Positions 2,371 to 51,600 of a DNA stretch of 64,000 bases are shown piece by piece (within the stretch, counting starts at the first letter, position 1; each line of letters starts with the position of its first letter). Position numbers and translations under genes: made by a program. Below the pieces are notes generated by a model, which was not told the origin of the DNA, made no database searches, and saw only the letters and a program-made list of their open reading frames with translations. Origin of the DNA: Lepidodermella squamata (Eukaryota > Animalia > Gastrotricha); NCBI GenBank assembly GCA_047495785.1, contig JBLDXI010000009.1, positions 806,001 to 870,000 on the forward strand, in the 5' to 3' direction.

Positions 2371-3643
2371 AGAAGCGCCTTCGTAATTGGCTCGCTTTCT
2401 TCCCTCCTCTCAGAGCGGAGAAATTCGGATTCGTGCCACACAGCTTTCGCATTCGCTCTCGAACGGTTGAAGCGCCGCGTTCGACACCGTCTCGCACCGG
2501 AAATAGCAGGGAAATAGCTGCGGCTGAATTTTATTACAAAACCGAGTAATAAAATAATGTTAATATACAGTCTTGTGATAAATTGATAAAACGTTAAAAT
2601 TGAAAACAAACAATTCAAATTTTGGCGCGGGCTCATCAAAAAACCGTTCCTTGGCTGACCGAGAGCGCCGCCGCAGCTCAGTGAGGGGTTTAAGATGGGA
2701 GCCTCGGAAAGGTAAACAGTCTACACCGTTGCCGCAGTTGGCTAGCCATATTACACGCACAGGGCAAATAGCCTATTACTGAATATTGCGCACTCCGATA
2801 TTATGTTTGGTTATTTGCGTGAATCGAATGATTACACTATAACATGCCATGCTGCGTTTTTTTACGTTTATGGTATATTGATAAGTTAAGGAGTTACATG
2901 TTCTCTATTTTATAATTTTCTTATTAGCTAACTGATCATTTTTGTTATAAACTGGCCCTTTGGCTGCTTTTGCCGCCGTTGTTAAATATCTCGTCACCAT
3001 GCGCTTCCCCCATAGAAATCGACGTCCCTTTCAGAAATGGTAAAACTTTTCACATGCTTGAGAAATAGGAATCAATACTCCAGCTCGTAGTTTTACCAGG
3101 GATAAGCCGCCCTCAAAGATGCAGGTCGGGAACAGTTAGCACGCTATTTGGTCTTTCGCTACTTTCCGGCTGATATTTCCCGTCTTAGGTAAAGTTAGAC
3201 AAGCTTTCCCTCCCTTATCCATTTTTCTTAACTAAGATGTCAGCCATCTCAGAGAAAAAAATATTTACAATATCTGGCAGATTGAGTAGGTAGGTCGTTT
3301 TGCATTGTTCCTCGGTTAATGTCGTTAGTGCTCGCAAGCGAACGTGCGCATAGTCAATTGTTAGCTCCAGGCTGGAAACTGGAAAGAGGCTTCGTACGGT
3401 TACTGCGACCCGCGACTCGGGTTCAATGAAGCCCCTTGTCAATTTATATTTCGTCTATTTAAAGGAAACAGGCATATTGGGACCAACTTTTTAAATTATT
3501 GTTGACAAGCGTTAATAGACTGCTGAGTTTTGTAATGTTTGTATCTTGTTTTGGTCGATTTTTCTGCTATGATTTTCCTCCCAAATTTTTCTATGATCGC
3601 AATTTTAGAAAGAACCGAAAGACGGAAAGCAGAAGGAAAGGAT

Positions 3644-6026
3644 ATGATTACAGTGTGCTCGCGATTTTACTCGTCTAAAAGCGCTTACGTGACTGATCTG
3701 GTCCTTGGCAATGGTCGAAAAATAAACTGCAAAACTGGCCATTTGGCAAGGTTGGCTGACGGATCATCATTGCTACAAACTGGACATACTGCTATTTTGG
3801 CCACAGCAGTCGGAAAGTCTAGTACAAATAGTTTGCTTGCGAGAGGTTTCGCCCCATTGAGTGTCGAGTACCGCCAAAGGGCTGCCGCAGCAGGTCGAAT
3901 TCCAATGAATTTCCTTCGACGTGAGATGGCTCCGTCTGAACGTGAAGTGCTCAGTGGTCGCCTGGTTGATCGGTCAATCAGGCCTCTGTTTGCTGTAAAC
4001 ATGCCGGTCGAAACGCAGGTGGTTTGCTCGTTATTGTCGATGGACTCCGAGAACGATTCGGATGTGTTAGCGGTCAATGCTGCTTCTCTGGCTCTGGCAA
4101 CCTCTGATATTCCGTGGGCGGCATCTTCGGAAGCTGTCGGTGCCGTCAGAATAGGACTGGTAGATGGAAAATATATTGCCAATCCCACCAAAAGTGAATT
4201 GCTCCTGTCTTCATTAAATCTGCTTTTGTCTGCGACGTCTACAGGTATTAGCTTGTTGCGCACCATGACTTGCGCGGAGGTTATCAAGTTGTGTTTTTAA
4301 AGGAAATATTATCATGCTGGAGGGTAGCGCAGGAGAAATCGATTACGATCACTTTATCGCAGCTCTTGAGGTGACTTTTCTTCAACTTTAGTATCTCATC
4401 ATTATCCTATATAGCCCGATGTAGTTTGGTTTAGTTGAAGCCAGTAAAATCGCAAGAAGAATATTGGAAATCGGCGTGGCAGCGGGAAAAGTTAAACGCA
4501 CAATTGGCGTATTAGCACAGCCGGATTCATCTGTTATGGATTCCATTTATTCATTGTCAGCTGTCAAATTGAGAGAAATTTTGTCAGATGCGTCGCATGA
4601 TAAATTATCCCGTGACAAGGCGATAAATTTAATGCGTGAAGAGGTTGTTGCTCAGATGCTATCAACCCAATCTACCGGATCGAATAATTTGCAAATCATG
4701 TATTCCGAGGCATTCTCGCAAACAGTGAAGAAGATTTTCCGCCGGCAAATACTTGATAAGCAGTTGCGATGCGATGGTCGAGGATTGGATGACCTGCGTC
4801 CACTGTCTTGCGAGGTTGACGTTTTTGCTCCTTTGCACGGATCTGCTATTTTTCAGCGCGGGCAATCTCAAGTGTTTGCCACAGTGACTTTCGACAGCCA
4901 AGAAGCGGCTTTTCGCCCGGATCCCGCGGCGGCATTGTTAATGGGCCTACGCGAAAAGAACTTCATGCTGCATTACGAATTTCCTGGGTTCGCAACCAGT
5001 GAGTTGAGTCGCCCTGGCGCAGTCAGTCGCCGTGAGATTGGACATGGCGCTCTAGCGGAGAGGTCTTTACGACCTGTCATACCAAGTGACTACCCCTTCA
5101 CCATCAGAATTACAGCGCAAGTTCTAGAATCAAACGGATCTACATCAATGGGCGCTGCATGTGCGGGCAGCTTGGCGTTGATGGATGCAGGTGTACCTCT
5201 GACAAGCACTCTTGGTCGCCCGGGACCCGGGCATATTGCTGGAGTAGCCATGGGTTTGATTACTGATGACGATTTGAGTAGAAACGTTGTGCTAACTGAC
5301 CAAATTGGCATCGAAGACTACATGGGCGATATGGACTTCAAGATTGCCGGCAGTCTTCGAGGTCTGACCGGGATACAAGTTGATACAAAGTTATCAACTG
5401 GTATCCCCATTGGCGTCGCTGCCGAGGCTGTGAAGCGAGGCCGATCTGCTATCGCAAGGACTATCGATGTCATGGCGAAAGCGATAGCAAAGCCTCGCAG
5501 TGAGAGAAAGCCTTGGGCCCCAGTCTCCGATCGATTCAGTGTGCCCGCTGCTCGTCGCTCCCAAATTGCCGGATTGGGTGGCTATAATTTGCGTCGTCTA
5601 TGTGCCGACACTGGAATAACACTGACACCTATTGACGATTCAACCTACGAAGTTTTCGCGCCTAACCCGCGCGCGATGTCCGAGGCGCGTGAGCGATTTT
5701 CAGCATTGTGTTCGACTGCTGAGAACGCATCGCAGGCATCTGGTGATAGCCAACTTGAATTTGGCTCCATCTGCAAAGTCAGGATTATCGAGTTGCGGGA
5801 TTTTGGCGTCATTGTCGAATTTCCAAAGACCGTTTCAGCCAACATTGGTCCCGTGCTGATTCATAACTCTCAACTTGATTCTAGGCGTATTTCGCATCCT
5901 TCTGCATTGGGACTTTCCGTGGGCCAAGAAATAAGCGTGAAATATTTTGGCCGCGACCCAGCTACAGGTGGTATACGATTGTCGCGGAAAGTTTTATTTG
6001 TAGGAGCCCCGTCTGGTAAAGTTTGA
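3644..6026 (+). CDS. PNPT1: Polyribonucleotide nucleotidyltransferase 1, mitochondrial (PNPase), ~756 aa
   Basis: Exons 3644-4244, 4303-4370 and 4425-6026 (GT-AG, in frame). Motifs include GRIPMNFLRRE, RLVDRSIRPLF, RCDGRGLDDLR, HGSAIFQRGQSQ, RREIGHGALAE, SNGSTSMG and EDYMGDMDFKIAG, followed by KH and S1 domains. Confidence 0.95.
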
Positions 6027-6373: not shown

Positions 6374-9300
6374 ATGGAGCTAGCACAGGTTAGCAATTGA
6401 TGATCCTTTCTCGATTCATTTCGTTATCAATTAATTCCATAGATTGACATGATCTACTCGCTGCTGTCGATGCTTAACACCGACGACAAAGAACACATTT
6501 CGCGAACACTGCTCGGCATGTCGACGTGCCGTGACTCGTGCATCGCTATGCGCCAAGCTGGCTGCATGTCTCTTCTCGTGCAACTCATTCACGGCTGCCC
6601 GGATAATGCCGCGGGTAGGAATCTTGGAGGCAGCGCCGCTACTAGCATTGTCTCGCTGTCCGGGTCCGGCGGCAGTCGTGTCGCCCGCCAGCGCGCCGCT
6701 GCCGCGCTGCACAACCTCGTACATTGTCTGCCCGACGAAAAGTGGCGGCGGCGCGAGGCGCGTGTGCTACGCCTTCTCGAAATCGTGCGCGAATACTCAG
6801 ATTGCCAACAGCAAAGAATGGCTGCAAGTGGACAAGGGGCGCCGCCGGTCGACGCCAGCCGTGTCGGACCCGCTGTCGCTGCACTTATGAAGCTGTCGTT
6901 TGACGAGGACCATCGCCACGCCATCACGGTGTTGGGTGGATTGCAAGCAGTTTCCGAGCTGCTTGTTGTCGACCTCGAGATGTTTCCGATCGTTCCTGGT
7001 GCTCGGCCCTCTGCCCTATCGCTGAACATCCGGCGGTTCGGCTGTATGACCCTGACAAACCTTACTTTCGGCGACGTCACTAATAAGTCGTTGTTGTGCT
7101 CTATGCCGACTACCTTGAAAGCTGTTGTCGCGCTGCTTGGGTTCATTGAGAACGAAGATATCGTCCAAGCTGCCGGCTCGGTTCTACGCAATCTTTCTTG
7201 GTCGGCCGACCCACCCAGCAAACTAGCCTTAAGAGAGGCTGGCGCCGTGAAGCAGCTCGTGCGTAGTGTCATGGCAGTTAAACGCGAAGCAACACGTACC
7301 GTATGTATTCTCGTCATTGTATTATTGTATATATTGGAAGCTATTTCCGCCTTGAAAATTCCCGAATGACTTGATTTTCATCTTGAAAAGTCACAACCAT
7401 TGTCCTAAATCTATACGTTTTCTTTCTTTCAGGCTGTTTTTAGTGGGCTGTGGAACGTTTCAGCGCATCTCTCGGAGAACAAGGCGGATATTTGCCAAAC
7501 AGAAGGAGCCTTGGACTTCATCGCTTATGCGTTAACTCTACCCGGCTCAATAGGCGAGTCTGCTGGGGGAGTGCTGCGTAACATATCGAGTCACATCGCT
7601 GTCAACAACGAATACCGACAAATCTTGCGGCGGCGAGGCTGCCTCGAAGTACTCGTATCGCAGCTCAAGTCGACAAATCTTACGACGGTGAGCAACGCTT
7701 GTGGCGCGCTGTGGAACCTATCTGCCAAGTGTCCCGAAGATCAACAAGCCTTATGGGAACTGGGCGCCGTGCAAAATCTACAAGCGCTTACATCGTCTAA
7801 GCATCAAATGATCGCGACCGCCGCATCGTCAGCTATTCGTAATCTGCAGTCTTATAAGCAGCAGCAAATGGCGATGGCAGCTGGGGGTGTTGTCGACGCT
7901 CAACATTGCATCAAACAATCGCTCAATAAAACGACATCGGAAAGTGGCGATACCACTCACGCGCCGCTCGCCTCGTCTTTTCCTGGTCCTGGTCGGCAAC
8001 TACAGTCTCAACCACCGCAGATGTCCACTAACCAGCAAAATCAGATGCAACACGTTTCATCGGCGTCATTTTCGTCGCCTTTTGCCCCGGCGAATGACCC
8101 CGTTAAGGTTGGCGGGGCAACAACAGCAGCTGCGAAAGCTCAGTCTTCCCTCCTCGGCCTGCTTGGCAACAAAAACTCAATATTGTATAGCGACACGCCT
8201 AACTCAAACGTCGTGCACCTAAACTACCTTCACATGTTGGCGACGCGGGGTCAGGCTCCGCCGTCCGCGCAGCAGCAGCAGCAGCAGCAAACGCCCTTTC
8301 AGCCACAGATTGCGAAAACACCGACAGAAAACTCTTCGGTGCGTGCGTCTCCGCAGCTGCAACGCCCTCTTTCGGCAAACGTGGCTGTTCGCAACATCGT
8401 CGGTCTTTCGCCATCGCCTTTTGCTGGTAAGAGCACTGACCTAGACGCGCCGCCTGGCAGCAACGATGACGACGAAATCGAAGACGAACAGCCGACCAAC
8501 TTTGGTCAGCGTTTTCAAGACACTGAGCAGCAAACGATGGCGCCGCCCCCTAAACCCACACAGCCCCAATTCTCGCTGGGTGCATATGGTGTTAAGAGTA
8601 GCACCTCTCCCACCGGTAGTTCGAACAGCAGTCATAATAACGAAAACAAGCTAAGCGAGCAAGCATCAGCGAAAGCAATGCAAGCGCCCGGTAAGCTGCA
8701 AGTGATGCAAGTGAAGCAACCGACGCACGTTACATTCGCTGAAACGGTCGAGCAGACCCCGATGATGTTCTCTCGACGTTCCTCTGTCGACTCGCTCAAC
8801 AGTGTCGATGTGCCATCAATCCGGAGTGATGCCGTGTCCGAATACAGCCGTATTGCCAGCGGCGTCATTTCACCGACTGATCTGCCTGAATCACCGGGTG
8901 CCATCGCCGAGGAACAGCTCCAGCAGCGGCTCCACCAGCAACAAGGCCGGCCGCAGAATGCGTTTCGACTGCCTGGCCCTGTGACTTCCGTTTTCGCGAC
9001 TCCCCATCCGATTGTGAAAGCCCGACTTGGTGCTACTGTGTCGGCACCACTTGCTGCCGCGGAAGAGTCGTTTCCGGCGGTGGATTCTTACGCTGACGAG
9101 GCAGAACGGCCTGTCATCTATGCGACAGAGGACACGCCTGCTGTTTTGTCGCATGCCACCAGTCTTAGCAATCTGACTACACCAGGCTTTGAAACTCCTG
9201 GCGGAACGTTTTCGCCTGTTCGTGCAGTAAGTTCTGTTTCATTTCTTGTGTTTGATACCCTTCGGAATAACGAGTGGCCTCTTCCTGACAATGCATATTT

Positions 9301-11474
9301 ATCGACTCTCTTTCTTTCTTCTAGATTGGAACTGATCGGCCTGTATCGCCCCCGACAGCCGCAAGCATGCGGTTGTTTTTCCCAAAAGCCGTCGAGCCGG
9401 AACCCGCAGATGACGAAGTGATGCAGTATTATACTGAGGATACTCCGTGCCACCTGTCAGCCTCCAGTTCACTGAGCTCACTCAGTGTAATGTCGCACGC
9501 GAGCAGCCGCAGGTCTGCTAACACCACCCCACTCCGTCAAAAAGTCTTTGCGCTTCAATCCGGCGTCGTTGGTCCAAGCTCTGGACCATTCTCGGCACCT
9601 GGAACCGGAGGCGCGGCTTTGCACCCGCGTGTTGTGGCTGCCGCGTCGCGAAACGCGGATCCATACGTGCGCAATTCTCCTTTCATGCAGGCAGCCGCTT
9701 TCAGCCCATTCGTAGCCGCTTCGCCTCATACTCGTCCGCGACCGAATGCCGCCGTACTGCTTGAAGAGTCGGGCGAGGATAGCCACAATGCATCAGGCAT
9801 CAGCCAGGAGCAAGTGGGAACACGGGATATTTCGTTGCACGAGGACGAAGGTGAAGATGCGCCGCGAGTGTTAGCTGAAGAGGAGGATGACGACGACGTT
9901 GACCACCGCATCTTACAGCACAACCAGCACAACAGCGAAGACGAGGGCGAGCCTGGTGATGGCTTAAAAGCTGCAGAACCACACGATCTTGATGACGAGG
10001 ACGGTGATGAGTCGGAAACTGAAGACCTCATTCAGCAACTGATCGATACTGCGCTTGAGAACCCGAATACTTCAATTAACGCTGCGAACAGCAGCCACAA
10101 GGCGGAGCCGAAGCAAGCCGACCCAGTCGACGCTTTGTCTGAACAGGTCTCTGCGGTACGCATCGGCGAAGTTGGCACTGATTTGGATGACGAGCCGACT
10201 GAAAAAGAGCTCGAGATGCTCGAAGAGTGTATTAATCTCGTGCTAACGCCAGATGCCGCCCCGCCTGCGAAACCGGCGCCTCCTACGACGGGTGTTGCGA
10301 TTAAGCTGTACCCGGAAGGAACGGCTCCCGTGTCTGAACCGTTTACCTCAGCAGCAAAGACAACGGTTTCCAGTACCACGTCCCCATCAAAAGCCGCTAT
10401 GATGCCAAGTCAGAAAATGTCAAAGCGCAACTCTTTGACGGTTGTACCCGCCTCTTCGAAGATACGGTCACCTCAAAAACCTAGTGGCAGTGAAACTGGC
10501 AGCGACTCGCAGCAACACATGCACTACCTAAAAAGTAAGTCGGTGTTTTGGCATTTTGCATATTTTACACCAAAGCCAAAGTCTGGACTAGTTTGATCAT
10601 TTTGGTCATTTTAGGAGATGAAATGGACGATTTCACCCATAATAATTAACATCTACAATTTATTAGATGTCTGTTTATATTGCATTTTTTTACAGGCCAA
10701 GCCGCATCGCGTCGAAAATCTGCAGCTGTCAAGCTCAACTCGGCAGAGACTTCGCCGATCGACGCTGGTCGTTCGACGTCCCCGGCAAGTCGTGGTGGTT
10801 CGTCATCTGGAGGGGGATCGAATGCGCGGCATGTGAGTTCGAAGAAACTGCAACCGCACGCCGGGGCTGCTAGCAGCAAACGATCGCCAACGCAAACCAC
10901 GCAACCAGGATCGAAACGCACCACCTCGCAATCACGCCGCAGCCGCAGCAGAGGCGAAGACGTGATAAGCGGCGCGAGTGGGCTCGTATCACCTCCTTCG
11001 GGTTCGTGTCCAAACAGTGCCTCGAAAGTGTCGCCCTCGTCTTCATCCAACGCTTCACTTGGCTCATATAATGCAAAACCATCCGGAGCTTGCTCGAACA
11101 TTGCGTGCGGCAACTCGATGAATGCCGCACAAGGCAGCACAAAGCGATGGAATTTCTCGACTCGCCCAAATCCGCCCACATCTAATGAACTTCAAGTCGC
11201 TGGGGCTAAACCATGTTGTAAGCATCACGTTGAGCGTGAACCTGTTTCCGATGCATCCTCGCGGCCATCTTCGTCGACTAACTACGTTTGGCAGCGTCCT
11301 CTGGCCGTGCAAAGCGGGCGCAAGCCGACGAACGCTTCATCTTCGGCGACAGGGGAGAACAGCCAACCTTGTGCTACACCAGACACGGCATCTACTAGTG
11401 CTCAGGATGGCACCGACGGCACCTCAAGTGGCCAGGGAAAATCCTCACGCCGCGTGCTCATGACGACAGTGTGA
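6374..11474 (+). CDS. APC: Adenomatous polyposis coli homolog, ~1551 aa (long isoform)
   Basis: Exons 6374-6388, 6443-7300, 7433-9226, 9325-10534 and 10696-11474. It has the pre-Arm segment MIYSLLSML...DSCIAMRQAGC and Arm repeats (LMKLSFDEDHR, MTLTNLTFGD, LRNLSW, VSNACGALWNLSAKCPEDQ). It also has a 15-aa-like repeat (EQPTNFGQRF), 20-aa repeats (QTPMMFSRRSSVDSL, TEDTPAVLSHATSLSNL, TEDTPCHLSASSSLSSL), a CID/sequence B (SGVISPTDLPESPG) and a C-terminal PDZ-type motif (MTTV). The start exon is inferred. Confidence 0.93.
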
Positions 11475-12363
11475 TTTGATCACTTCGAATAAATTCAGAT
11501 CAGCTAGTCACCCTGCATGCATTTTTACCATCATTGATCGAACTTGTGTAGTAAATCTTTTTGAGTATTATTTCTGTTTCGAATGGTATTATTATTATTC
11601 GTATAATTAGTACCACGATAATATCAACTTCTTTCATTTTTATTCTTATTGTTTGCTCGTTCATCGCATGGCGCTCTCGCTATTTTTCATTACATTAGGA
11701 ACGCTCAACCGTGGTTGTTACGTGACGAAATAGCCTTACAGTTTTCAAGAAATGCTGATCACCTTCTATCAACAACAATAGCGATCTCTTGTGCGCCTGC
11801 CAGTTATATTCGTTAGTTTCTTCCCGATTTTAGCCAGCTTGTTGGCTTTCGCTTTTTTATTTGTTAACGATGTTTGCGGTCATAGCCTCGAACTCAAGTA
11901 CGCCTTGCATTCTAGAAGAAAGTTGATTAATTGCTAAATCTTTATGGTGAGATGATATTAAAGGCACTAGCTAATTAGCCCTTTCATCTTTTCATTGGTT
12001 ATTTTAGACTGCCGAAACTATGTCGCCACAATACATTAACAATGATTTTTCATTTACTTTACGCTCGATCAAAAAGACGTTTTTATGCATTGTTAGCAAA
12101 GAATAAATAATGAATAAAATTTGTGTATATACTGAAGTTTTTCGAATTCACACACAACAGTTGACAATGTAAGCGCTTGCTGCTGCTGAGCCGCATGATG
12201 GTAACGGTCCGCTATTGATTGGGTATTTTTGAGTGTTACGAGCTGCTTATGCTTAGGATAACTGGTTCATTAATTTCATTTTTAGACTAGAATGAGCTTC
12301 ATGACGTGTGGTCTTTCTATGATCGCCAACTTGGAAAGAATCTAAGGATGGAAAGAAAAAAGA

Positions 12364-13571
12364 GGTTTCAGTTTTCATGCTCGGAATTAGTTGTTGTAGT
12401 CGTGGTCTGCTCGCTGCAGCTACTGCTGTTGCGACATCGTTGTTCTCTCTCGTCACTAGATGAATTGATCAACAAAGCCCGATCGCTAAAAATGGTGTAA
12501 ATCCAGTTCGCAAAATCGATCCTGAATTTGAACAGTCACCGCTAACAGTTGATGAAGTTATTTGGAATGCAAGCTCACCATAACGTCCGGTCTTCCTCCG
12601 TGAATACCTGATTCGACTTGACACAGTCTTCCTCGATCGCCATCAATAAGGACCGAAACATAAGCTTTGGGATTAATAAATGCTGTGAGCACAGCAGCCA
12701 AAAAATGAAGCAACCTTACCCCATACTCATTTTCGTAAATTTCATTTTGCAAATGAGCTGGCATATTGAAGATACGTACGGCTTCGGCTGCAAACAAATA
12801 CTTATTAATGCTTCATTTTGGCTAAGAAAACTTTCAGCTGACCTCTAACAGCGATCGGGTCGTGAGCGTTGTCGACCAAATACCGAATAGAGGAAACGAC
12901 GCGCGGCACATGCTCATTCCGTAGCCAGTCATTTTGTCCCAATTCTTCTGTGCTCACATTCCGAAGATGAACGAAGAGGTCTTTGAAACGAAGATTATCT
13001 GTTAAAAATCTTACAAAGAGAAAAGCGTAAATGCTAACACGCATCAGTAGTGAAATGGATTTTTACAAACCTGACAAAAAATTGTGTCGAATTCTCAGAG
13101 CTATTCGTAATGAAGTTGTTGAACATGATTTTCAAACGACTTTGACTGTGAGGGTCATCCATTCACTCGCGTTAAGTAATCAGCGAAAATGTAAGCCCTT
13201 TATTTTGCGATATAGTAATGTTAGTTTCTTTCGAACCGCGCAAATTCAGAAGCGCATTCGTCTTGTTTACATGAGATTTGGGTCCTGATGAGCTGATGCT
13301 GTATTTTTGTTGACCAAGGACTGTGCGGCTGATGATGGCTGTCGTAAATGAGTCTTCTGTAAGTTATCGACTTTTTGTGTATCCGCTAATTATTGTGCAT
13401 CGCTCGTGTTTTAAGCTACATGAGGTTTTTGTATAAACGACGTGCGGCTTGAACAATATTTTCGCACTGGTTTCAATTTTCATGCTCGGACTTAGTTGTT
13501 GTTGTCGTGTCTGCTCGCTGTAGCTACTCCTTTTGCGACATCGCTGCTCGCTCTCTCTCGTCGCTAGATGA
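12364..13571. repeat. Diverged ~100-bp direct repeat pair bracketing the globin gene (12364-12463 and 13469-13571)
   Basis: GGTTTCAGTTTTCATGCTCGGAATTAGTTGTTGTAGTCG...CGTCACTAGATGA is repeated as GGTTTCAATTTTCATGCTCGGACTTAGTTGTTGTTGTCG...CGTCGCTAGATGA, with substitutions and small indels. Confidence 0.9.
12368..13162 (-). CDS. Single-domain globin, 5 exons, 188 aa
   Basis: Minus-strand exons 13162-13071, 13009-12843, 12787-12720, 12664-12579 and 12521-12368, separated by GT-AG introns of 61, 55, 55 and 57 nt. Product: MDDPHSQSRLKIMFNNFITNSSENSTQFFVRFLTDNLRFKDLFVHLRNVSTEELGQNDWLRNEHVPRVVSSIRYLVDNAHDPIAVRAEAVRIFNMPAHLQNEIYENEYGLMFRSLLMAIEEDCVKSNQVFTEEDRTLWIDFANWIYTIFSDRALLINSSSDEREQRCRNSSSCSEQTTTTTNSEHEN. 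By-eye alignment places CD1 Phe, E7 His, E11 Val, F8 His and H8 Trp, with introns at the ancestral B12.2 and G7.0 positions. Confidence 0.88.
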
Positions 13572-15506: not shown

Positions 15507-17864
15507 TCAATTATCAAGTTTACTGCCAGATTCAGCCGACATTGCCCGTTGAGGAATCGGCGACGAACTGTTCACCTTAATCGTTCTGACAGTGAGGTCG
15601 CCCGTTGCCTCGCTTGAATGCGACAGCTGCTCGTCATTATTGCCGGGATAGTCGGTACCGTAGCTGTCTCTGAATGACGGCCGAAAAGAGTTTTGTCCAG
15701 CATCGTTTTGAATACGCGATTGAGCGCTCTCTGTTCCCGCATCGGTGGATGGCACAGTAAAAACGGTGCTGGCTCGATACTTGAGTTTGGGCGAAGAGTT
15801 ACCACCGAGAAATCGTTTCATCGTTGAAATTGTAAAGCCTGAAACAAATTTCATCCATATAGACATATAAAAAAAATCAGTCTTCGTGAAAAAACCTTTG
15901 TTGCTAGTTGGTAAATTGCTGACAAATAGCGGAACATTCTGCTGTGTTTTCGTTGGGACGCGCGCGTCACTTTCTGCCGAATTTGTTAGCACCGGGTGAA
16001 TAATTGAAGCGCTGGCTGGAGAGGTGATAGTCGTCGCATTTATCCCACTATGAGCCATGTCCAGCGGCAGAGAAAGCATTTCCACGGTCGAACGTGGCGC
16101 CGTGTTTTGCGGCTTCGCCGTCGGGCTATCTTCTATTCCACTGTCATGACCATCGATAGCGCCGACTCTGAGGCCGTTTTCGCCAAAGCCCTGTAGCAGG
16201 TTTTTTGTAGAATTTATACTCGACGCCATTGCATCGTTCTCCGCGAGCAGATTGTCCGGGTCGCTCCCTGTTTTTCCGGCGTCAGCTGAACCCAAATAAC
16301 CGTTTTCAACAACGGCAAACACGTCATTCGAATCGCTATTAGCTGATACGGGACGGCTAGCAGGACAGTGATTAACAAGAATACCATCTGATGCGTAGAA
16401 AAGGCCATCAGCAGTCGCCATCAAAATTGGCGTCCCCAACCGAGATGGGGGTCGGTTTTCGTCATCAGTTCGGTCGGTTTTCGGCGTTGAAGCTGTTGAT
16501 GGTAAGGTATTGGAATTTGCGTCAGTATTTTGGCGACGGGAGCTCATTCGATGCCTACTACGAGCCTGGTTGGCTCTCTGACGGTTTCGGTGGACAGTTG
16601 TTGCTTCGATAAATGTTTGTGAACGTATGGTCTCCGCGGCCGAAGAGATGTCCTCATCTTCGATCGAAAACGGCCTGTTCCGCCTTTGAAGCCATCGCGA
16701 TTTCGCAACAATGTGCTTAAGCCGGCTCCATACCGATCGATACAGCGCAAACGTTAAAATGGGCGTCAAAATTGACGGCAGGAAGTTCAAAAACTGAACA
16801 GTAGTTTGAAACTCTTTGGGGAACAGTTCATCGTAATGGTCAGATTGAGCGTCGTTTGTCGTTGAATTGAGAGCAGAATCATTCGTCTTTTTGATCAGGG
16901 ATTGTGTGAGAACGTCGGAGTTATTATTCGACGTACTGTTATGTAGATTGAATGATACACGAGTGGGAGCTGCGGTCGTAAAATTAAGCCTTGGTTCAGG
17001 GGAACCATTGCCGTTCGGATAATCTTTCGACAAAATGATATCAGATGTCAACGTGACAAACAACGGCGTTTGGCAAAGCAACCATACAAGATAAAGCACA
17101 GAGACATAAGCTGCGACCTCAAAATCCGTCATAGGGCGATAACTGCTCTTGCTTTTCAAGCGCTTTCTAATGACATTTCTGTTCTCGACATTGGAATAGT
17201 CAGCGTTTTGATTTTGACAAGTTCCAACATCTTCTATCACGCTGACCATCGGTTCTTGTACGATGTACTTTTTAAGTATCATCAGCAAGAATACTGAAGT
17301 GAAGGCGATTGGAATCGCATAACCGAAAGTAACCATTATTATGGCGTAGCTCTCAGGTGTCTCAGAGGCAATTAGACAGGAGAAATGGTTTCTACGGTAA
17401 AAAGTAGGTGTCACGCCAGTTAGCATTGATATGTAAACAGCCGATGCGTGAACCCAACAGTATATGACCATGCACCAAGCACGTTCTCTTGTGACCCTAT
17501 CTGGATAGTTTATGGGCGAATAGATGGCAACCATCCTATCCAAAGCCATCATAGACGTCAATACTATTCGGGCTGTAGGAATCAACGAATTGAAAAACGC
17601 GTGATATCGGCAAAGATGAATGCCAGGTTCATTTTCCAGTGGCCACTTGTTCAGGAATGCCGCGGAAGTCGTCAGGGTCATATTGCAAATGGAATCTACC
17701 CATGATATTATTGCTTGACCCAGCATTAAAACATTAAATGCAGGAAGACGAGTGCGCTTTTTGTACGTCAGCGCGAATACCACGAGAAAATTTGACAAGA
17801 AGGACGTGACAGTCAAGACCAAACCGATGGAAAACAGCGTTGAGCTTTCCCATGAAGTAACCAT
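15507..17864 (-). CDS. Rhodopsin-family orphan GPCR, GPR161-like
   Basis: Seven hydrophobic segments, WP..C at the start of TM3, and an ECL2 Cys. ALDRMVAIYSPINYPDRVTRERAWCMVIYCWVH resembles recalled GPR161 [33 protein letters not shown]. There is a long Ser/Thr-rich C-tail and a probable 57-nt stop-free intron at 15839-15895. The GPCR call is firm; orthology to GPR161 is tentative. Confidence 0.85.
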   Translation of the reverse strand: MVTSWESSTLFSIGLVLTVTSFLSNFLVVFALTYKKRTRLPAFNVLMLGQAIISWVDSICNMTLTTSAAFLNKWPLENEPGIHLCRYHAFFNSLIPTARIVLTSMMALDRMVAIYSPINYPDRVTRERAWCMVIYCWVHASAVYISMLTGVTPTFYRRNHFSCLIASETPESYAIIMVTFGYAIPIAFTSVFLLMILKKYIVQEPMVSVIEDVGTCQNQNADYSNVENRNVIRKRLKSKSSYRPMTDFEVAAYVSVLYLVWLLCQTPLFVTLTSDIILSKDYPNGNGSPEPRLNFTTAAPTRVSFNLHNSTSNNNSDVLTQSLIKKTNDSALNSTTNDAQSDHYDELFPKEFQTTVQFLNFLPSILTPILTFALYRSVWSRLKHIVAKSRWLQRRNRPFSIEDEDISSAAETIRSQTFIEATTVHRNRQRANQARSRHRMSSRRQNTDANSNTLPSTASTPKTDRTDDENRPPSRLGTPILMATADGLFYASDGILVNHCPASRPVSANSDSNDVFAVVENGYLGSADAGKTGSDPDNLLAENDAMASSINSTKNLLQGFGENGLRVGAIDGHDSGIEDSPTAKPQNTAPRSTVEMLSLPLDMAHSGINATTITSPASASIIHPVLTNSAESDARVPTKTQQNVPLFVSNLPTSNKGFFTKTDFFYMSIWMKFVSGFTISTMKRFLGGNSSPKLKYRASTVFTVPSTDAGTESAQSRIQNDAGQNSFRPSFRDSYGTDYPGNNDEQLSHSSEATGDLTVRTIKVNSSSPIPQRAMSAESGSKLDN

Positions 17865-20364
17865 TTTTCAAGTCACATCTGTTAACAAAGAAACAAAATC
17901 TTAATCATATAAAATCAACGCGAGTTTAAGAGGCTTTTGGATAAATAAAATGACCAAGAACCCTTTCTCAGGACGTCTTAGCATCGTGTAATTTTGGGCT
18001 TTGAGAATTTATGGGCCAGGCATATACATTAACGCAGAGGCTGAAAATGGGCTGTTTTATCGATTTGGTCTTTCTTCATTCCCCTAAAACAATAGATGAT
18101 AAAATAATTTCCACAGAGACACTCCACTCAAAGTTTCAATTCAACGTAGCAAATGTGCTTGATTAATGGATAGCTGAATTGATGGACCTATAAGCCCAGT
18201 CGCCAGTTACCCGACGTTATACTTGGGCATCATTGTGAGGGTTGAACTTTGGGAAGCAAATCACCGAGTTGATGATAGTTTATACGGGTCGATGGCGCAA
18301 TGACGGAGACTAGGAACTAATTAGCAACTACCTGCCGATGTATTCTTTCTCAGCTATTTGAAACTTTTGAACGCTTCCTGGACATCCAGATTAAACAGTA
18401 CATTCACGAATCCAAGTTTCTACTGCGATGATCAGTTGAGCGAGCTGCTGATTTGGGGTGGCCGCGCATGGGTTTGCGTGAAAGCGTTTGTAGAAACTAA
18501 AAATTAATTATCAATAATAACAATTATTTAAAATAATGTTTTAAAAATTGTACACAAATTAATACAACTTGAAGATGAAATGAATGAACTCAATTTTTTT
18601 CAAATTTTTGAGCACCAGTTTTTTAGTCGTTTTATTTTACAGTCCTCCTCTCGTTTCTCGGATCGATGGAGCCAAGTTTGCAAATGTGTAGGTGGAGCGC
18701 TGTTCAATTTTCTAGACTTTTGACGTCATACCTGACCCCATGCCGAGTAATACTCTCAATGTTGACCGGTCAGGCATGGCCACTATAATAGCAAATAAAC
18801 GGTGATCGAAATCCAAAAAGGGATTAGACATCCCAAGCTCCAAGAATCTGCCAGTTGGAAATCATTGTTTGGATATTAAATGTATGGAAATTGGCCATAC
18901 ATTTTATTTTATAATTTACTGGGGGCTAGAAGCTTCTTCGGTTTTATTGCCACGCCTGTTTGGTCATTCATGGTATAAGCATGCTAATGTTTAAGTATTG
19001 CCGGTAGATTGAAGCGTCGACACTTTGGAATTTGGTTTAAAAAATTAGGGGAAAAGAAAAAACATTTTATTGGCCAAAATTAGGTTAGAGCAGGCTCGCA
19101 ACAGGTGAAAGCATATGACTAATATGCAGTTTTTTGTCTTAATTTAGCTGTTCTACAGAAAATGTCAAGTAGGCGACTCTATCAGGGTCGGCCGATTCTG
19201 AGAAGCTGAATAGGCTCGTGAGCTCATCGAAGCCATTTCGGGTACTGGAGCGGAATGGTAGCATCTGATCGGCCGTTTGACCCCACTCCCCATTTCAGGA
19301 GCCAGAACCGACTTTCCCTTCCGAGTGTAGCGGCTGATCACATACCATCATACTTGACACATGCCTGGTCGTTTAAACTGGGCGGGTTTAAAGAAAGAGT
19401 CGCACCGCATCGCTAGTAGTGCTATCGTTATTGTTAGTGGCAGTTGACTGAAGTATATTTCTGCGGCATTTTCAGCCCATGTGGCCCGAAGAACGGATGG
19501 TCAGAGGAGCGGCAGGCCGAGATAGATTCGACAGTCTTCATATCTTCAGTCAGTAGAAGTTGACGTTGGAGAAGCTTAGTCTTGATGTGGGCAGCGCACT
19601 CGAGGCGAGCAACGATGTTCAATATAATTTTTCTTATTAGATAGATCATAGCTCTATTTTTATAATTTATTTTTGTATCTTATTGTGCCTTTTCTGCGCC
19701 TAACACTGTATTATCGGTCTAACTCATCAACCCAAGCCCTGTCAAATCACCAGAATTGGTGTCAGGGTCTAACATATATCCATCCATCCAGCAGCTTTTC
19801 GGGACACCAGGTTCCGAGTAGAGTCGCCCATCCACATCATTGCCGTGTAAACACTTCCCGTATGCTATCAGAGTCGGCCTCTTTCACTAGGAAATAGTGG
19901 CGGAGACAGGCTACTTGGTTGCGACTTTTGGAAGCAGCAGGCTGAAGTCGCGCAGCAGAAGGTCGTGCTTCGTCGGTTGAGGAAGGCCAAGACACTTATT
20001 GACGAAGCGTGCATGGTGCCGGAGGCCCTTGCAACTGGCGAATTAAATCCCCAAGCTCTATCGAAAATCTATTTCCATGAAATAACTTGAAAACACATTT
20101 TTCCCGTGGGGGAGTGGCTGCTAGTTGTAATGCTTTTTCACTGTTGATGAGAGCTACATTTTGACACCAACATCAAATCGATAGGAGAATATAAAAAAAC
20201 CTTTAAAATTTGACCGACGCCAGCTAAGAAAGAACTCAGAAAGATAGAGAGAGGAAAGAATTGTTAATTTTTCTTTAAAGATAAGTATTTCATAATATAA
20301 TATATAGTTACTCAAGTATACAGTGAAAACAATCTTTTTTAGAGCGTTATTCACTGATACTGGA

Positions 20365-22318
20365 ATGCTGTGGATCAGTCGATTGCAGGACGCCGCTGGC
20401 AAGCCAGAGAATACAATTCCAGTTGGTTTCAAACAAATAGCCTATGGAACAGCTGGATTTCGCGACAAAGGCACCATCTTACACCATGTGGTTTTTCGTA
20501 TGGGTGTGCTTGCCGCAGTCAGGTCTCAGTATCTGGGCAAAGCTGTTGGTGTGATGATTACGGCGAGGTAAAATTTTATATGGCGTTGCGGCGCGTTGCT
20601 CATGATTATTATTTTTGACATCGCTTCGATAGCCACAATCCAGCTGAGGACAATGGCGTGAAAATAGTGGACTCAGATGGTGAAATGCTAGCTGCTGATT
20701 GGGAACCTCTGGCAACTATGTTGGCAAATTCCGCCGACATCGCCGAGGCGGTCACTAAAATTGTCCAAGATCTGAAAGTCGGTTTTGCTGAAGTCAGCAA
20801 AAGTTACCCTTTGGTTGTAATTGGACGTGATACTCGTCCGACCAGCATTGACTTGTGGAAAGCTGCAATCGACGGTATAACAGCCATGAGATTTCCGTTT
20901 ATCGGTACGCAATAATATAATCAAGGTATTTGTGTGTAGCTTTTTTCAATATATAGACTGTGGAATTGTAACGACTCCTCAACTTCATTTTGTCGTTCAA
21001 AAGCTAAATAGCGATTACGCCCGTGATGGCTTCAATCCATCAAACATTTCCCTCGATGACATGCCATCTCTTTACCTTAATCGATATTTCGAAGAGATAT
21101 GTGAGGCATACCGGGAATACATCGAAATAGCGAAAGACAAGCCAAAGTCTTTGGAGAGGCTAGTTGTCGACTGTGCCAACGGCGTGGGAACCTTTGCTCT
21201 CCGAAGCGTAGCGGCAAGGCTGTCTCAAGTTGCCCCTATTGTTCCTGTCAATGTCGAACATGAATGTTGTGAGAAGTTGAATTTTCAATGCGGTGCTGAT
21301 TACGTGAAAGTTCAACAAAAACCTGCTGGCGGTATGTTGGCGCTGTGGTTTTTAGCCTAGCTCGTTACTACGACCTTTGATATTCCTAGGTGTTGATTTT
21401 GCTCCGGGAATACGATTCGCCTCATTCGATGGTGATGCAGATCGCCTTGTTTATTTTTATCAAGATAAAACTTCCAAACAGTTTCGATTGTTGGATGGCG
21501 ACAAAATAGCAACTTTGATGGCTGCCCACTTGGGTGAGCTGCTGAGTCGCGCTGACCTGCGAAGCGTACTGTCCGTCGGTCTCGTCCAGACAGCGTATGC
21601 CAACGGCAGTTCTACCAGCTATATCTGCGAGCAACTTAAAGTTCCAGTTGTATGCGTACCTACGGGCGTTAAATATTTACACAAGGCCGCCCACAAGTTC
21701 GACATCGGGATTTATTTTGAAGCCAACGGCCATGGAACTGTTTTATTCAGTGAACGAGCTTGCTCGGTGCTGTCGGAACGATGCAAGAAGCTCACGGACG
21801 AAAACATTGATGAAATGTCGATTGCCTTGAGAAAACTCGACGCCTTGCGTCGCATTATCAACCCTGCTGTTGGCGATGCTTTGAGCGATCTTCTCGCGGT
21901 CGAAGCAATTTTACACGACCGCAACTGGAATGCGGAAGAGTGGAACAAGTGTTATACCGATTTGCCTAGCCGCCAGCTCAAGGTTACGGTTAAAAATCGG
22001 GCTGATATTACGACCGAAGACGCCGAAAGACGCTGCGTGAAACCTTCTGGTCTTCAGCCAGCAATTGATGAACTTGTCAAGAAAGTAAGGCTGGGTCGAG
22101 CTTTTGTTCGTCCTTCGGGAACTGAAGACATCGTACGAATGTGAGCATTCTGCTTATTTATCTTAATTATCCAAAACATGTTTATTGTCATCAGTTATGC
22201 CGAAGCTGATACTCAGGCTGCTGCCGACTGGCTTGCTTACGACGTTGCAATGGCTGCCTACACGAATGCTGGCGGAGTGCCACCGGAACCGATTAAACCT
22301 ACCTGCGAACGTATTTAA
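20365..22318 (+). CDS. PGM3: Phosphoacetylglucosamine mutase, ~574 aa
   Basis: Exons 20365-20567, 20633-20904, 20957-21331, 21390-22140 and 22195-22318. Motifs: YGTAGFR, MITASHNPAEDNGVK (catalytic Ser), TTPQLH, DCANGVG, SFDGDADR, FEANGHGT, RPSGTEDIVRIYAEA. Confidence 0.95.
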
Positions 22319-40702: not shown

Positions 40703-43700
40703 TTACGTGACAGAATCCACAGATTGAGAGAAGTTCGCGTTATTTAATCTAGACGAGGGGCCAGCAGCATTTACAGCATTTTGTTGCAAACCAGATGTCG
40801 ACGACGAAGCCGCGTGCGCGCCGGAGACCGTAGCTGTCGCCACAACTGCGTTAGCACCTCCAGCAGCTGAGTTCGAAGATGAACCGATGCCTCCTTGCTG
40901 GGGTTGCGTATCTACTGCCCCATATAGTCGACCCAATTTTCGGTTCATTTGCGATAACAGTTGCGTGGATTGACGGAAAGCGCTCAGAAGTTCTTCATGC
41001 CACTAAAATAATTATAAAAACACATATGTAGGTATAGTTAATAATAAGTTTTTCCTACTATTACCTGCTGAATGAGAATGCGGTCAGGCAACGAAAGAAC
41101 CAACTCTGATCCTGCTTTGAGCTGAACGACGATGCAATTGTCGGCTTTATTGACGCGTTGTAACTCACACGAAATGTCTTTGATATCAACCATTGGCACC
41201 AGCTCAACGCCCTTATCAGCTATTATTACACCGTCTTTGCTTTTCTGGTACAATTCTAGCCGGTTGGGGAAGAGGCGGAGGTGTCGGCGTTCCCACGTTT
41301 TATTAAATGGTCCACCGAGGCGGGAAACTTCGCCATCGACAATGCAGTCAGTTGGACAAGTTGTTTCAGAGGAAGTACTTTCACCGGCTTGGCGCGCTCT
41401 CCTTTTACCTTCAATGCGGTCAGTTTCAGAATTAACAGCGTCGAAAATCGTCTCAGCGATTTCTTGTTGCCACCGTTCCGATATAGTAATGTTGAAGTTT
41501 TTGTACAACTCATGGTCAGCGTCCGTCAATTTGATATTTTTCGTATCCTCTTCGTCGAATGAGCCTATGTCGAACGCATCAGCAGCGTTCACTTCGCCTC
41601 TAGGAGGAACCAGGGGAGGTTGATACTTTTGTAAATAGACTAGCTGCCAATCTAGGTCTGCGAAAAACGGATGACTCTTCACTTCGGATGCACCTCGCGA
41701 TCCACAACCCAGCCGATCCTCAACGTTTCGTCTTAAAAGACCCTGTAACAACGAATGGAGCTCGGGACTGAGCCCTTCAGGCAATTCAACGTCCATTGTC
41801 ATCGTCATCTTGTCTATTTGGTGCTTATCACGAGTCTTGTGCTGACGAAACGGGGAATGCCCGCGAAGCAATTTGTATAGCATGCAGCCTAGCGAGAACC
41901 AATCAGCCGATGAGTCATATGCCACGCCTTTCAAGAGAACTTCTGGTGCCATGTATCCATGGGTTCCACTAAATGCCAAGTACAAATAGCTCGTTATCAT
42001 GTAGCGGTAACAAAATACTTACACGCTCGCATGGGGTTTTTTCTTAGAAAAATCACACGCCAGACCAAGGTCCGATATTTTAACATGGCCATTCTCGTCC
42101 AGCAATATCTATAAAATGAGTCAAATTAACCAGCTCTTGCTTCTTATCAATTAATATAAATTACGTTCGCCGGCTTTAGATCACGATAAACAACGTATCT
42201 AAAAAATAAAAAGCGCGTTGCTGATAAGAAAATTATTAATAAGGAGCGCTTTACCGGCTGTGCATATGCTCCAGGCCCAGGATAATTTCGGCAGCATAAA
42301 ACTGAACCTCGCGATCGCTGAACACACCGTGCTGGCTCAAGTGATAGTGAAGATCTCCGCCATTCATCAGATCCAGGATGAAACACAGTTTCTCGGGAGT
42401 TTGAAAAGCATAAGCCATGCTACGATAACAGGATACAAATTAAATCGCCACGCACTAGCATGCAAACTCACCAAACAATGAAAGGACTGCCTTCTCCAGT
42501 ACTGACGAGCGAAAGCATAATTCGTTCGTTTAGAGCCAAAGTTTCGCCTCCTTTCAACTTGATACGCTTTTTATCGAGGCATTTCATCGCATACATTTTC
42601 CCGGTATCAGCTGAGGATAAAACGAAATTAAACCACGTAATATCACGGTCAAGTGATATCAAACCTTTTCTACACCCATATACTTCGCCAAAGCCGCCTC
42701 TACCAATGATGCGATGGACACTGAAGTCATTCATTGAAAGTTGAAGGTTGGCTTCGAGGTTTTTCCATTGTAAGAAGCGCGTATATTTGTCGGAAGAAAT
42801 GAATGGGTCGAAGAGACGACTTCTCAAAATGTTTTTAATTTCTTCGATGTACGGTTGGAAGAGGGCATTAGATAGTTGGTGAGACTTTTGAGCTGCAGTT
42901 AGCTGCTCTTGGACAGCTTCCACTGCCGACTTGGTATACGCATGACTCGACGATAGCAGTTCTCTCATAATGAAATTATCGTATATTTCTTTCGCTTTTG
43001 GAATACGCTCTTCATCTGAATCCAGTTTTTCGTACTCTTTTATCTATTGAAATTTGTCATTAATAAAATGATGCGATAAATTTAAACAAAATTTTACCGC
43101 CTCGTAGAATTTGATCTGTGGCACAGACTCGTTATAAACATTTTCACAGAAATCTTTGAATAACAGATATCCCAAGCGTTGATTGAAGATTTTCTCGAAA
43201 TTGACATCGCCGTTTTTCAGGAGGTACTTGTGCATGACACTCCGAATGCTGAAATACAAACGCCTTTATTTTATATCGGTCTATTTTGCCTTCCCCTAAT
43301 ATAAATCAGAAGTACAGCCCAGTCAACGGAAATCAGAGTCAACGTTTAATAAAATTTTGTCATCAAATTTCGGCCGTGCGCCGAAATCCTTAAATAATAT
43401 TCTGTGAAAAGCATTGAGCTAAATCGATATAATTATAAATGGAAATCTTCAGAAGGGATAAACTGACGGAGATCCTCGCGCGATTATTGGTGCGTATTCA
43501 TCACAAATGAGAACTGCCCAATTATTTAGACGATTCGTCATATAAAACAGCAAATATCTACTGCCTAGAATCAGCAAATAATTAATAAAATAGCGACAAC
43601 AAGCGCAGAAATTCAAATAGCGTGCAAACCTTCTTCCATTGGGTGATTGCATAATGCTATCATCTCTTCTTTGTAACGCATTACAAGAGTGGCTGATATT

Positions 43701-48640: not shown

Positions 48641-51600
48641 ATGGATGAACATGGAAGGGATAAAATATCTGACAGCAAACTGAAATCGAAAGGATCCCCA
48701 GGAAAAAAGCACATCGATCGTCGGAATTGGAAACTCATTGCTGACCCGGCTCTCGGAAAGGGGCAAGAAAAAATCTACAGATTTGACGGAGTCGTTAGTG
48801 GGGCAAGTTTTCATAAAAATTACGTTGCAAAATTTATAATTGCGAGATTATAGAACCCTGTCCCAGTAATTGCGCACGATCCACGTTTCAGATTAAACAG
48901 GCTCAAATTCAACGTTGAGCCGATCGATCTACCTGTTCCGAATTTGAAGGTAATTTTGATATAAATGGTCAGACGAATTATTTCCCCACATGCTTACTTT
49001 TTAGCTCGATGCCAATTACGTGGGTCCTCTTCCTCCGAAAGACGTTTCATTTGCTGGCTTGAATGACAACATCAATGAAGCTTTTCTCGCTGATATGTGT
49101 CGTCCATTTGGCGAAATCGAGTTACTCGAAATTTACACCCATCCTAAATCTGGCAGGCGCTTAGGCGTTGCTAGGGTAAGATTTCATGCGTAATTCAGCA
49201 TAACTGTAATTTCAATTGTATTTTTTAGGTGCTTTATTGTTCAGTCAAATCAGCCAGGTTGTGCGTCGAAAAGCTGAACAATACATCCAAAATGGGAAAA
49301 ACTATATCCGTATTTCTCGATGTTGGCGGGAGGCACCGTACCAAGCTGTTAGACGAAATTATCAGTGAGGTTAAGCATTCTACTATCGAATCTGAGGTGC
49401 AAGATTCCAGAAGTGGCGAAACACTCTTGGAGGATGCGATACTCAGAGCGGGAAAAGATCATGCCCATCGCCATTCACCTCAACACTCTAACAATGCTCA
49501 AAATCGGAATTCGCCCATCTTGGCCTCAACTACGTCGAAGGTATTACGAAGCTCAGGTGATTCCGATCGTGATGCAACGTCAAGCTCTGAACCAGAATGG
49601 ACTGGCCATGAAGAATCTTCTCTAGTGGCTGATAAGGAGGAAGGGGAAATTGAAAGTGAAGATTTTTCGCAGTCTGAATCTTCATCTGAAGATGAGGACA
49701 CTGAAGAGTCGATTTCTTTAGAACAACGCATTCAGGCTCTACTTACTGGGAAAGAGCCTAAAAAAGAAAAAGAACTTGAACCGCCTGTTCAATCTCAATC
49801 GCTCACGAAACAAACCAATAGCCGCGTAGTTGAGTCGAGGCAAAATTCAATTCCCACTGTTCCTGATGAGCCATCTAGCATTAACACGCCAATCACACCA
49901 GCTTCAATGGACGTAACAGCTCCACCCTTTGTGTTCCCCATTACGTCGCTTCCTCCGCCATTTGTGCTTCCGCCTGGTATACGGCCTCCAGCATCGGCGA
50001 TATTTGTGTCAAAGGAGCAACATGGAGCGTTGTTTACATCAACATTTGAGCTATTTATTGCCGAATTGAGGCGCACTTTGTATCGCGATCTCTGCCGACG
50101 TCTTCTTGAACAATGTGCCTTTCGTCAGTTGGACAGTTGGTGGCTTAAAAACGAAATCAGAAGTCGGAATAAGAAGCCTGACGACTCCAGGGCCAGCGTC
50201 CCTTCTCATGTAACACAACCTGAAAACAAGGTCGCGCCGCCTTCTTTCAGCGAATCAAGTGCTGCTCCTGTTGTCAACGGCAGTGTAGAGAAACAGGGAT
50301 GGGATCGAATGTTTCGTCAGGGTGGCGTTTTCGGTTTACGCGACACGCTGCCCAAATTGCCCTCATTCAAAGCAAGTGAACAGCTAGCTTTAAATATCAG
50401 CCTTTTTAATATTTCATTTTACTTGTGTATAGCGAAAAGATTCGGCGATTTCTTCCTCCCTGAACGAATCATCCGCAAAAGGCGAAGCTGATAGGCGAAA
50501 TCGGGAGAGCGCGGATAGTCGATCTCACAAAATATTGCATTCGGACTCCGATCATTCGCTGTCTGAAGTTCCGGTGGCTGCAAAGCATCAAAAGTCTAAT
50601 GGAGAACACTATGAACATAGCAAAAAAAGGAAAATTGCACACATGTTATCTGATAACAGCGATACCGAGTCGGAGTCAAGTGATTCATCGGCATCTGAAG
50701 AAGACTCATCGTCGGAGTCAGACGCTGATTCATTCGACTCTTCCTCGAGATCGGCACCCTCGACCAAACAGAAAACTGATTCGTCAATCGCTCACCCCAT
50801 TTCTATTAATACCGGCGCTGAAATCCAGAAACCAGACGCCGATTCGGCGCGACCAACGACACCTGCAGCTGTGGTACCTACACTGTCCTCCCCTGTTACT
50901 TCACCGCAGAAGCCTAAAGCACGATGGGCCATGTTTGTTCAGGAACAAGATCAACATCATTCCAACGATGCTTCGACGACATCTGCTCCCCCTACGACTT
51001 CATTGGTGACTCAAAATGATCACAAAGCAGTGGATGCGAAATCTCGGGACTTCCCAAAAGCATCTGCGAAAAGTAAATCAACCGACAAAAACGATGCAAA
51101 AGGAAAACAGACGAAGCGCGTGCAGAAAAAGGCGCTGCAGATTGAAAGCGATTCATCTTCCGAGTCGTCTGAAACTTCGTCAACCGAAAGTGGTAACACA
51201 TATTAGTTCCATTCAATTATTCTTATTTAATCATTAATTTCCAGATGGCCGAAAACCGCTGGTTAGCGATGCTAGCGAAGACGTGGAGCAAAAGCAAAGT
51301 GTTAAGAAGCCGAAATCTCCAGGGCCAAACAAAAAGATCACCCCGGCTCGAAAACCACCCAATTCGGCAAAAAATTCCGGCTCGGCAAAAGCTTCATCTA
51401 AAGAACCTTTGCAGCAGCAACAACAGCAGAAAGTGAAGCCTGTTGTTCAACATCAACAGTCATCGCCCAGGAAACCTGTTGTGAAAAGAGTTAACACCTT
51501 ACAAGCTGAATTTAAGGCAGAAGCTCCATCTAGTAACAGCCAAGACGACGAAAAATGCGATGGCGAGGATGTGCGACGCATCGTCGATCCTTTCCTGCCC

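Follow-up and report, generated by a model that had tools for sequence, protein, structure and literature searches.

A predicted five-exon, highly divergent globin gene with two extra introns, and its syntenic counterpart on a metagenome scaffold

The globin locus and its neighbours

The window, by which we mean the whole 64-kb stretch of DNA that was analysed, carries on its minus strand a gene of five short exons which, when joined across four GT-AG introns, give an open frame of 188 aa, and comparison with related sequences supports the reading of this product as a globin (Table 1). An earlier note on this DNA had described a 188-aa protein hidden from the open reading frame track, and both parts of this description were borne out: the joined frame is open, and the mechanical ORF list offers fragments of 20-79 aa only at the locus. 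An in-frame TGA stands immediately 5' of the ATG at 13162, exon 1 ends in phase 2 within the B12 Arg codon (AG/gtttgt), a weak donor (GTCAGC) opens intron 2, and the codon of W138 is split as TG/G. The joined protein carries F29 (B10), L37 (C2), F43 (CD1), H64 (E7), P66 (E9), V68 (E11) and H98 (F8, in the motif MPAH), and thus all of the residues that had been named before, i.e., Phe B10, His E7, Pro E9, Leu C2 and MPAH, are present. The same applies to the ends of the protein. The N-terminus reads MDDPHS, and MENCER in the relative described below, so that neither has Gly2 and the reported absence of a Gly2 acylation motif was correct, while the Ser/Thr-rich tail, previously given as about 30 aa with two Cys, comprises 33 aa with Cys167 and Cys173. 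A second globin copy (paralogue) was looked for within the 64-kb window and none was found.

The remaining genes recognised in the window are included in Table 1. The phosphoacetylglucosamine mutase gene among them, with its very short introns, is that of a compact-genome animal. Upstream of the globin gene lies a single-exon gene for a receptor of the rhodopsin family, and an exact look-up of its product found no record.

Table 1. Features of the globin locus, other genes of the window and the orthologous exons on scaffold L001
Feature	Position	Strand	Description
PNPase-type 3' exoribonuclease	3539-6026	plus	Exons; RNase_PH and PNPase domains (Pfam)
APC (adenomatous polyposis coli) homologue	6449-11474	plus	Exons; Arm and APC repeats (Pfam)
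Repeat copy A	12364..12463		Codes tail residues ~158-188, the stop codon and 4 nt beyond
Globin gene	13162-12368	minus	5 exons, 4 GT-AG introns, open 188-aa frame when joined
Exon 5	12368..12521	minus	Helix H (WIDFANWIYTIFSDRALL) and 33-aa Ser/Thr-rich tail; stop codon 12370-12368
Intron 4	12522..12578	minus	57 nt, GTGAGC...CAG, phase 2, inside H8 Trp codon (TG/G)
Exon 4	12579..12664	minus	86 nt, helix G and GH corner to first two bases of Trp138
Intron 3	12665..12719	minus	55 nt, GTAAGG...AAG, phase 0, G7.0 within one codon
Exon 3	12720..12787	minus	68 nt, helix F, proximal His98 (MPAH), FG motif E-I/V-Y-E-x-E-Y
Intron 2	12788..12842	minus	55 nt, GTCAGC...CAG, phase 1, in Ala87 codon near EF/F boundary
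Exon 2	12843..13009	minus	167 nt, B13 to EF corner; CD1 Phe43, E7 His64, E9 Pro66, E11 Val68
Intron 1	13010..13070	minus	61 nt, GT-AG, phase 2, position B12.2
Exon 1	13071..13162	minus	30 codons and 2 nt, ATG at 13162, helix A to B12
Repeat copy B	13469..13571		306 nt upstream of the start codon, frame broken by indels
GPCR neighbour, rhodopsin family	15507..17864	minus	Single exon, upstream of globin gene; Pfam 7tm_1, E 2.5e-23
Phosphoacetylglucosamine mutase (PGM3/AMG1)	20323-22318	plus	Introns of ~65, 43, 58 and 54 nt
Protein kinase and PH domain	41038-42000	minus	Exon, Akt-like
N-SET (Set1/COMPASS)	51283-52434	plus	Fragment
WD40 beta-propeller	61897-62760	plus	Exon
Globin orthologue on L001	10745-10827, 10887-11127, 11260-11433		Three exons, 165 aa

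An orthologue on a metagenome scaffold and the identity of the protein

The GPCR neighbour has one homologue with 42% identity, P0005, which lies on the ENA metagenome scaffold L001, and used as a synteny anchor it led to the orthologue of the globin gene. A local tblastn of the joined model (E 9e-23) located this gene at 10745-11433, co-linear with the window gene and on the strand of the GPCR homologue. The two globins are 41% identical over 163 aligned residues, with a dN of 0.57 and a saturated dS. The start codon of the orthologue stands at the place equivalent to the window ATG, and all four window junctions are crossed by the alignment without a gap or a frameshift. Intron 1 is kept in L001 with a length of 59 nt, at the same codon position and phase and with the same GTTTGT donor, and the second L001 intron (132 nt, phase 0) corresponds in position to window intron 3. 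At the sites of window introns 2 and 4 the coding sequence of L001 is uninterrupted; opposite the split Ala87 codon the orthologue has Asn, and opposite the split Trp138 codon an intact TGG (Trp). Exons 2 and 3 are 44 and 55% identical, respectively, to the L001 middle exon, exon 4 is co-linear except for a difference of four residues in the GH corner, and in exon 5 the helix H part is conserved and the tail is not. On the basis of these comparisons, the L001 gene is best regarded as a syntenic orthologue that supports all four splice junctions of our model.

Three more contigs (L002-L004) hold near-identical copies of the relative's locus. Among the four copies, the exons vary at 2 of 498 sites and the introns carry SNPs at 8 of 191 (Fisher p 8e-4), in addition to intron indels of 5 and 8 nt, which would break a frame. 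Like the dN and dS values, this pattern points to constraint on the coding sequence. The interval between the two neighbours differs between the species. In L001 (351-11433) about 8.3 kb separate the GPCR from the globin gene and include several called genes, one of them for an 822-aa ANF_receptor-family protein, while the window has at this place 2.3 kb of AT-rich DNA without a long ORF, the intervening genes of L001 being absent from the window.

The identification of the protein as a globin came mainly through the orthologue. Its middle exon (L001:10888-11127, 80 aa) matches the Pfam family PF00042 with an E-value of 6.2e-5 and 23.9 bits, the gathering cut-off being 22, whereas Pfam gave no match for any single exon of the window gene or for the read-through ORF. 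The closest solved relative of this middle exon in PDB is cytoglobin (E 0.11), and with a profile built from it and window exons 2 and 3, cytoglobins took 5 of the best 6 PDB rows (E 0.13-1.3). The cytoglobin alignment spans B13 to F8 with the E7 and F8 histidines both in register: Phe43 and His64 align to the Phe of QYF and the E7 His of cytoglobin and are both kept in the orthologue, and His98 in MPAH pairs with the His of NIKNH in the orthologue and with the cytoglobin F8 His in KAHA. From CD1 Phe43 to E7 His64 there are 21 residues, and in myoglobin the CD1-to-E7 spacing is likewise 21 residues. In the ESM-Atlas feature comparison, 29 of the 30 hits of window exon 2 were globin clusters (score 0.92, 194/256 features), which we treat as a lead and not as proof; exon 5 had no usable match there.

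Several searches returned nothing or chance matches. A phmmer search of PDB with exon 2 gave chance matches to Cys-loop channels only, a word search with the 79-aa exon-2 ORF had no match, and neither had metagenome scans that used exon 2 or the L001 exon as query, or a PDB search with the last exon of the orthologue. The predicted structure of the 80-aa fragment from helix B to FG reached a pLDDT of 68; it gave no clear fold match, as Foldseek ranked cytoglobin second (E 8, TM 0.50) and a wide VIA-align fold search recovered generic helical hairpins only. A big HMMER search with 55 aa of exon 2 as query reported just two matches, both of them spurious, one to a TrwC relaxase repeat protein and one to a TPR protein. 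Since this query scores about 31 bits on the ORF of the true orthologue, corresponding to E ~0.02 at the size of the library, the orthologue itself would fall above the reporting cut-off of E 0.001, and the otherwise blank search consequently excludes close relatives only.

Introns, haem pocket and tail

Two of the four introns stand at positions known from other globins. In the cytoglobin alignment the first Phe of cytoglobin FFVNFP is paired with the residue that directly follows the split Arg31 codon (FLTDNL in the window), and intron 1 was accordingly assigned to B12.2. The G7.0 intron of cytoglobin and beta-globin comes 12 residues after F8. Intron 3 of the window gene follows F8 by 11 residues in phase 0, and owing to this distance and the right phase it was assigned to G7.0 within one codon. 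Both B12.2 and G7.0 are ancestral globin intron positions (PMC7457136), and the claim that the gene retains them holds exactly for B12.2, and for G7.0 only within one codon of alignment slack. The two further introns of the earlier note, one of phase 1 placed at the EF/F boundary and one of phase 2 within the H8 Trp codon, are both there. Intron 2, in phase 1, lies 11 residues before F8, and it would be named EF5 when counted back from F8 and about F2 when counted forward from E7; the result differs with the direction of counting because E7 and F8 are 34 residues apart here, as opposed to 32 in neuroglobin and cytoglobin. Intron 4 is at H8.2.

The extra introns, at H8.2 and in phase 1 of EF, are at positions with nematode precedents: an H8.2 intron is listed for the Brugia malayi C36E8.2 orthologue, and the combination of B12.2, EF2.1 and G7.0 for the Brugia malayi ZK637.13 orthologue (PMC2576238, Table 4). 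Moreover, in the globins of arthropods and deuterostomes 15 of 18 variant intron sites fall within helices E and F or between them (PMC7457136). The positions common to the nematode and window globins are most likely independent events. We saw no similarity of the introns to the flanking exons or to the rest of the window. Since the orthologue is without both extra introns, these appear to be lineage-specific events and not features of a class of globins. They may be gains in the line of the window species or losses in that of its relative, between which two species cannot separate, although gain would be favoured for introns 2 and 4, given that they are absent from most described globins.

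The earlier note had also reported an unusual haem pocket, and this did not survive comparison with the orthologue. The residues that the two species share are B10 Phe, CD1 Phe, E7 His, E11 Val and F8 His; further common elements are Y-L/I-V-D-N at the end of helix E, the acidic stretch E-I/V-Y-E-x-E-Y after F8 (FG), a Cys in helix G and F-T-x-x-D-R-T-x-W in GH/H. The odd residues of the window protein are, on the other hand, not found in L001, which has the usual Pro in place of Leu at C2, Arg in place of Pro at E9, and NIKNH in place of MPAH with its F-helix Pro. The distal side of neuroglobin consists of Phe-B10, His-E7 and Val-E11. Because the odd residues are not kept in the orthologue, the conserved pocket is canonical and neuroglobin-like.

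The C-terminal tail is encoded within a local repeat. A direct repeat of about 100 bp, whose copies A and B are 86.5% identical over 104 columns, brackets the globin gene, and a third copy was not found within the 64-kb window. Copy B does not code for the tail peptide, its frame being broken by indels. A unit of about 1.1 kb may once have been duplicated in tandem and have left this repeat behind. The Ser/Thr-rich tail is probably a young, unconserved appendage in this locally duplicated segment. Just downstream of the globin stop, 50 nt at 12314-12363 are 78% identical to 3588-3637 in the PNPase-like exon (E 4e-5 within the window); this likeness is probably due to chance or to a small repeat.

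Taken together, the locus very probably holds a single-copy gene that is intact and encodes a small globin (188 aa) of one domain, canonical though very divergent. Such a protein would bind haem b through His98 (F8), and given the neuroglobin-like combination of Phe-B10, His-E7 and Val-E11, His64 would probably also coordinate the unliganded iron (bis-histidyl). Its role would be expected in intracellular O2, NO or redox chemistry and not in oxygen carriage. The protein is probably soluble and cytoplasmic, since it has neither a signal peptide-like start nor a Gly2 acylation site.

Alternative readings and relation to known globins

That the gene encodes an unrelated small helical protein with a chance likeness to globins would agree with the lack of a significant Pfam or PDB match for any window exon alone, with the two spurious repeat proteins that were all the big search with exon 2 returned, and with a partial structure model that found no clear globin match. 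We consider this exceedingly improbable, since the exon of the orthologue exceeds the curated Pfam Globin cut-off, the best-ranking solved relatives are cytoglobins, to which both histidines align, and the Atlas matches of exon 2 are globins in 29 of 30 cases, in addition to which one intron lies exactly at B12.2, a phase-0 intron lies at G7.0 within one codon, and the spacing of CD1 and E7 is that of myoglobin. A globin gene that is a decaying or silent relic, its frame still open but no longer expressed or functional in the window species, is somewhat more plausible but still very unlikely. The weak donor of intron 2, the helix-unfriendly Pro at E9 and in helix F, the Leu in place of the C2 Pro that the orthologue keeps, the overlap of the local ~100-bp duplication with the 3' end of the gene, and the loss from the window of the genes that the relative has between GPCR and globin could all be taken as signs of decay. 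Against this, none of the five exons is interrupted by a stop, every splice site is GT-AG, the gene matches the orthologue co-linearly at its start and across its four junctions, and every key haem residue is retained. Moreover, 41% of the residues are kept at a saturated dS, where an unconstrained copy would not have remained open, an argument to which a recent loss is invisible.

Within this gene model, the acceptor of intron 3 allows a second choice, as two in-frame acceptors are found 18 nt apart, at 12683 (CAG) and 12665 (AAG). Splicing at the CAG (intron ending at 12683) gives an intron of 37 nt and adds HLLIPK at the FG/G junction for a total of 194 aa, and this model was dropped for the one with 55 nt and 188 aa after comparison with the orthologue, by which alone the choice was made: the 188-aa form aligns to the L001 protein, which is without the six-residue insertion. 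The mature mRNA could nevertheless use the upstream CAG, or both acceptors could be used to give two isoforms, as both preserve the frame, the triplet CAG makes a better acceptor than AAG, and short introns exist in the window, down to 43 nt in the PGM3-like gene. However, 37 nt is shorter than every intron measured in the window: those of the PGM3-like gene are 43, 54, 58 and 65 nt long, on which account about 55 nt is a normal size here and 37 nt would be exceptional. A rough survey of intron lengths across the window gave so few candidates that no lower bound could be derived from it. Furthermore, the CAG comes 3 nt past a branch-like motif (CTCAC, read by eye), and in intron 4, too, an AG some 20 nt before the true acceptor is skipped, since splicing there breaks the frame. 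Use of the upstream CAG hence seems rather unlikely, and the 55-nt intron and the 188-aa protein are preferred.

Like neuroglobin and cytoglobin, the window protein has a single globin domain of about 150 residues, and with neuroglobin it has in common B10 Phe, E7 His, E11 Val, CD1 Phe and F8 His. The B12.2 and G7.0 introns of cytoglobin- and neuroglobin-type globins are found in the window gene too, whereas the central E11.0 intron by which neuroglobin is recognised is absent. Sequence similarity to cytoglobin is marginal (E 0.1-0.3 against PDB), and the N- and C-terminal extensions of the cytoglobin type are lacking. The FG corner differs from those of both families in being acidic and Tyr-rich, E-I/V-Y-E-x-E-Y, and is conserved in both of our species. 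For globin X, the E10.2 and H10.0 intron positions are characteristic (cf. PMC7457136), as is an N-terminal acylation motif (Gly2, Cys3); the window gene has neither E10.2 nor H10.0, with no intron in helix E and the one of helix H at H8.2, and its product has no motif for myristoylation at Gly2 or for palmitoylation at an N-terminal Cys and, except for the unconserved tail, no long N- or C-terminal extension. The three-exon structure of the relative, with introns at B12.2 and G7.0, corresponds to the ancestral structure that has been described for GbXL genes of metazoans (PMC7457136). Nematode globins are likewise small and very divergent and have lineage-specific introns, but they belong to a different phylum and have no demonstrated sequence kinship with the window globin.

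From the sequence alone, it had been suggested that the gene may represent a lineage-specific class of globins. As judged from its sequence, the gene appears to be a divergent member of the known globin family, and a "new class" is unsupported. The literature searched contained no paper on gastrotrich globin genes. It is a tentative and, in our view, unlikely idea that the gene and its metagenomic orthologue form an unrecognised globin lineage limited to this group of small animals, marked by the neuroglobin-like distal pocket, the acidic Tyr-rich FG corner and the G-helix Cys, in which the two introns were recently gained in the window species; if it were true, the EF/F phase-1 and H8.2 introns would be a dated case of intron gain.

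For this animal, the gene adds one more unannotated, highly divergent globin, and it illustrates that divergent multi-exon globins evade ORF-based and single-exon searches. What is known of globin chemistry is unchanged by it, as the conserved pocket is canonical and the window species alone has the odd residues. Globins are a gene family long used in the debate on intron gain and loss, and these two orthologues, of which only one has the two introns, provide a clean small example of such a gain or loss.
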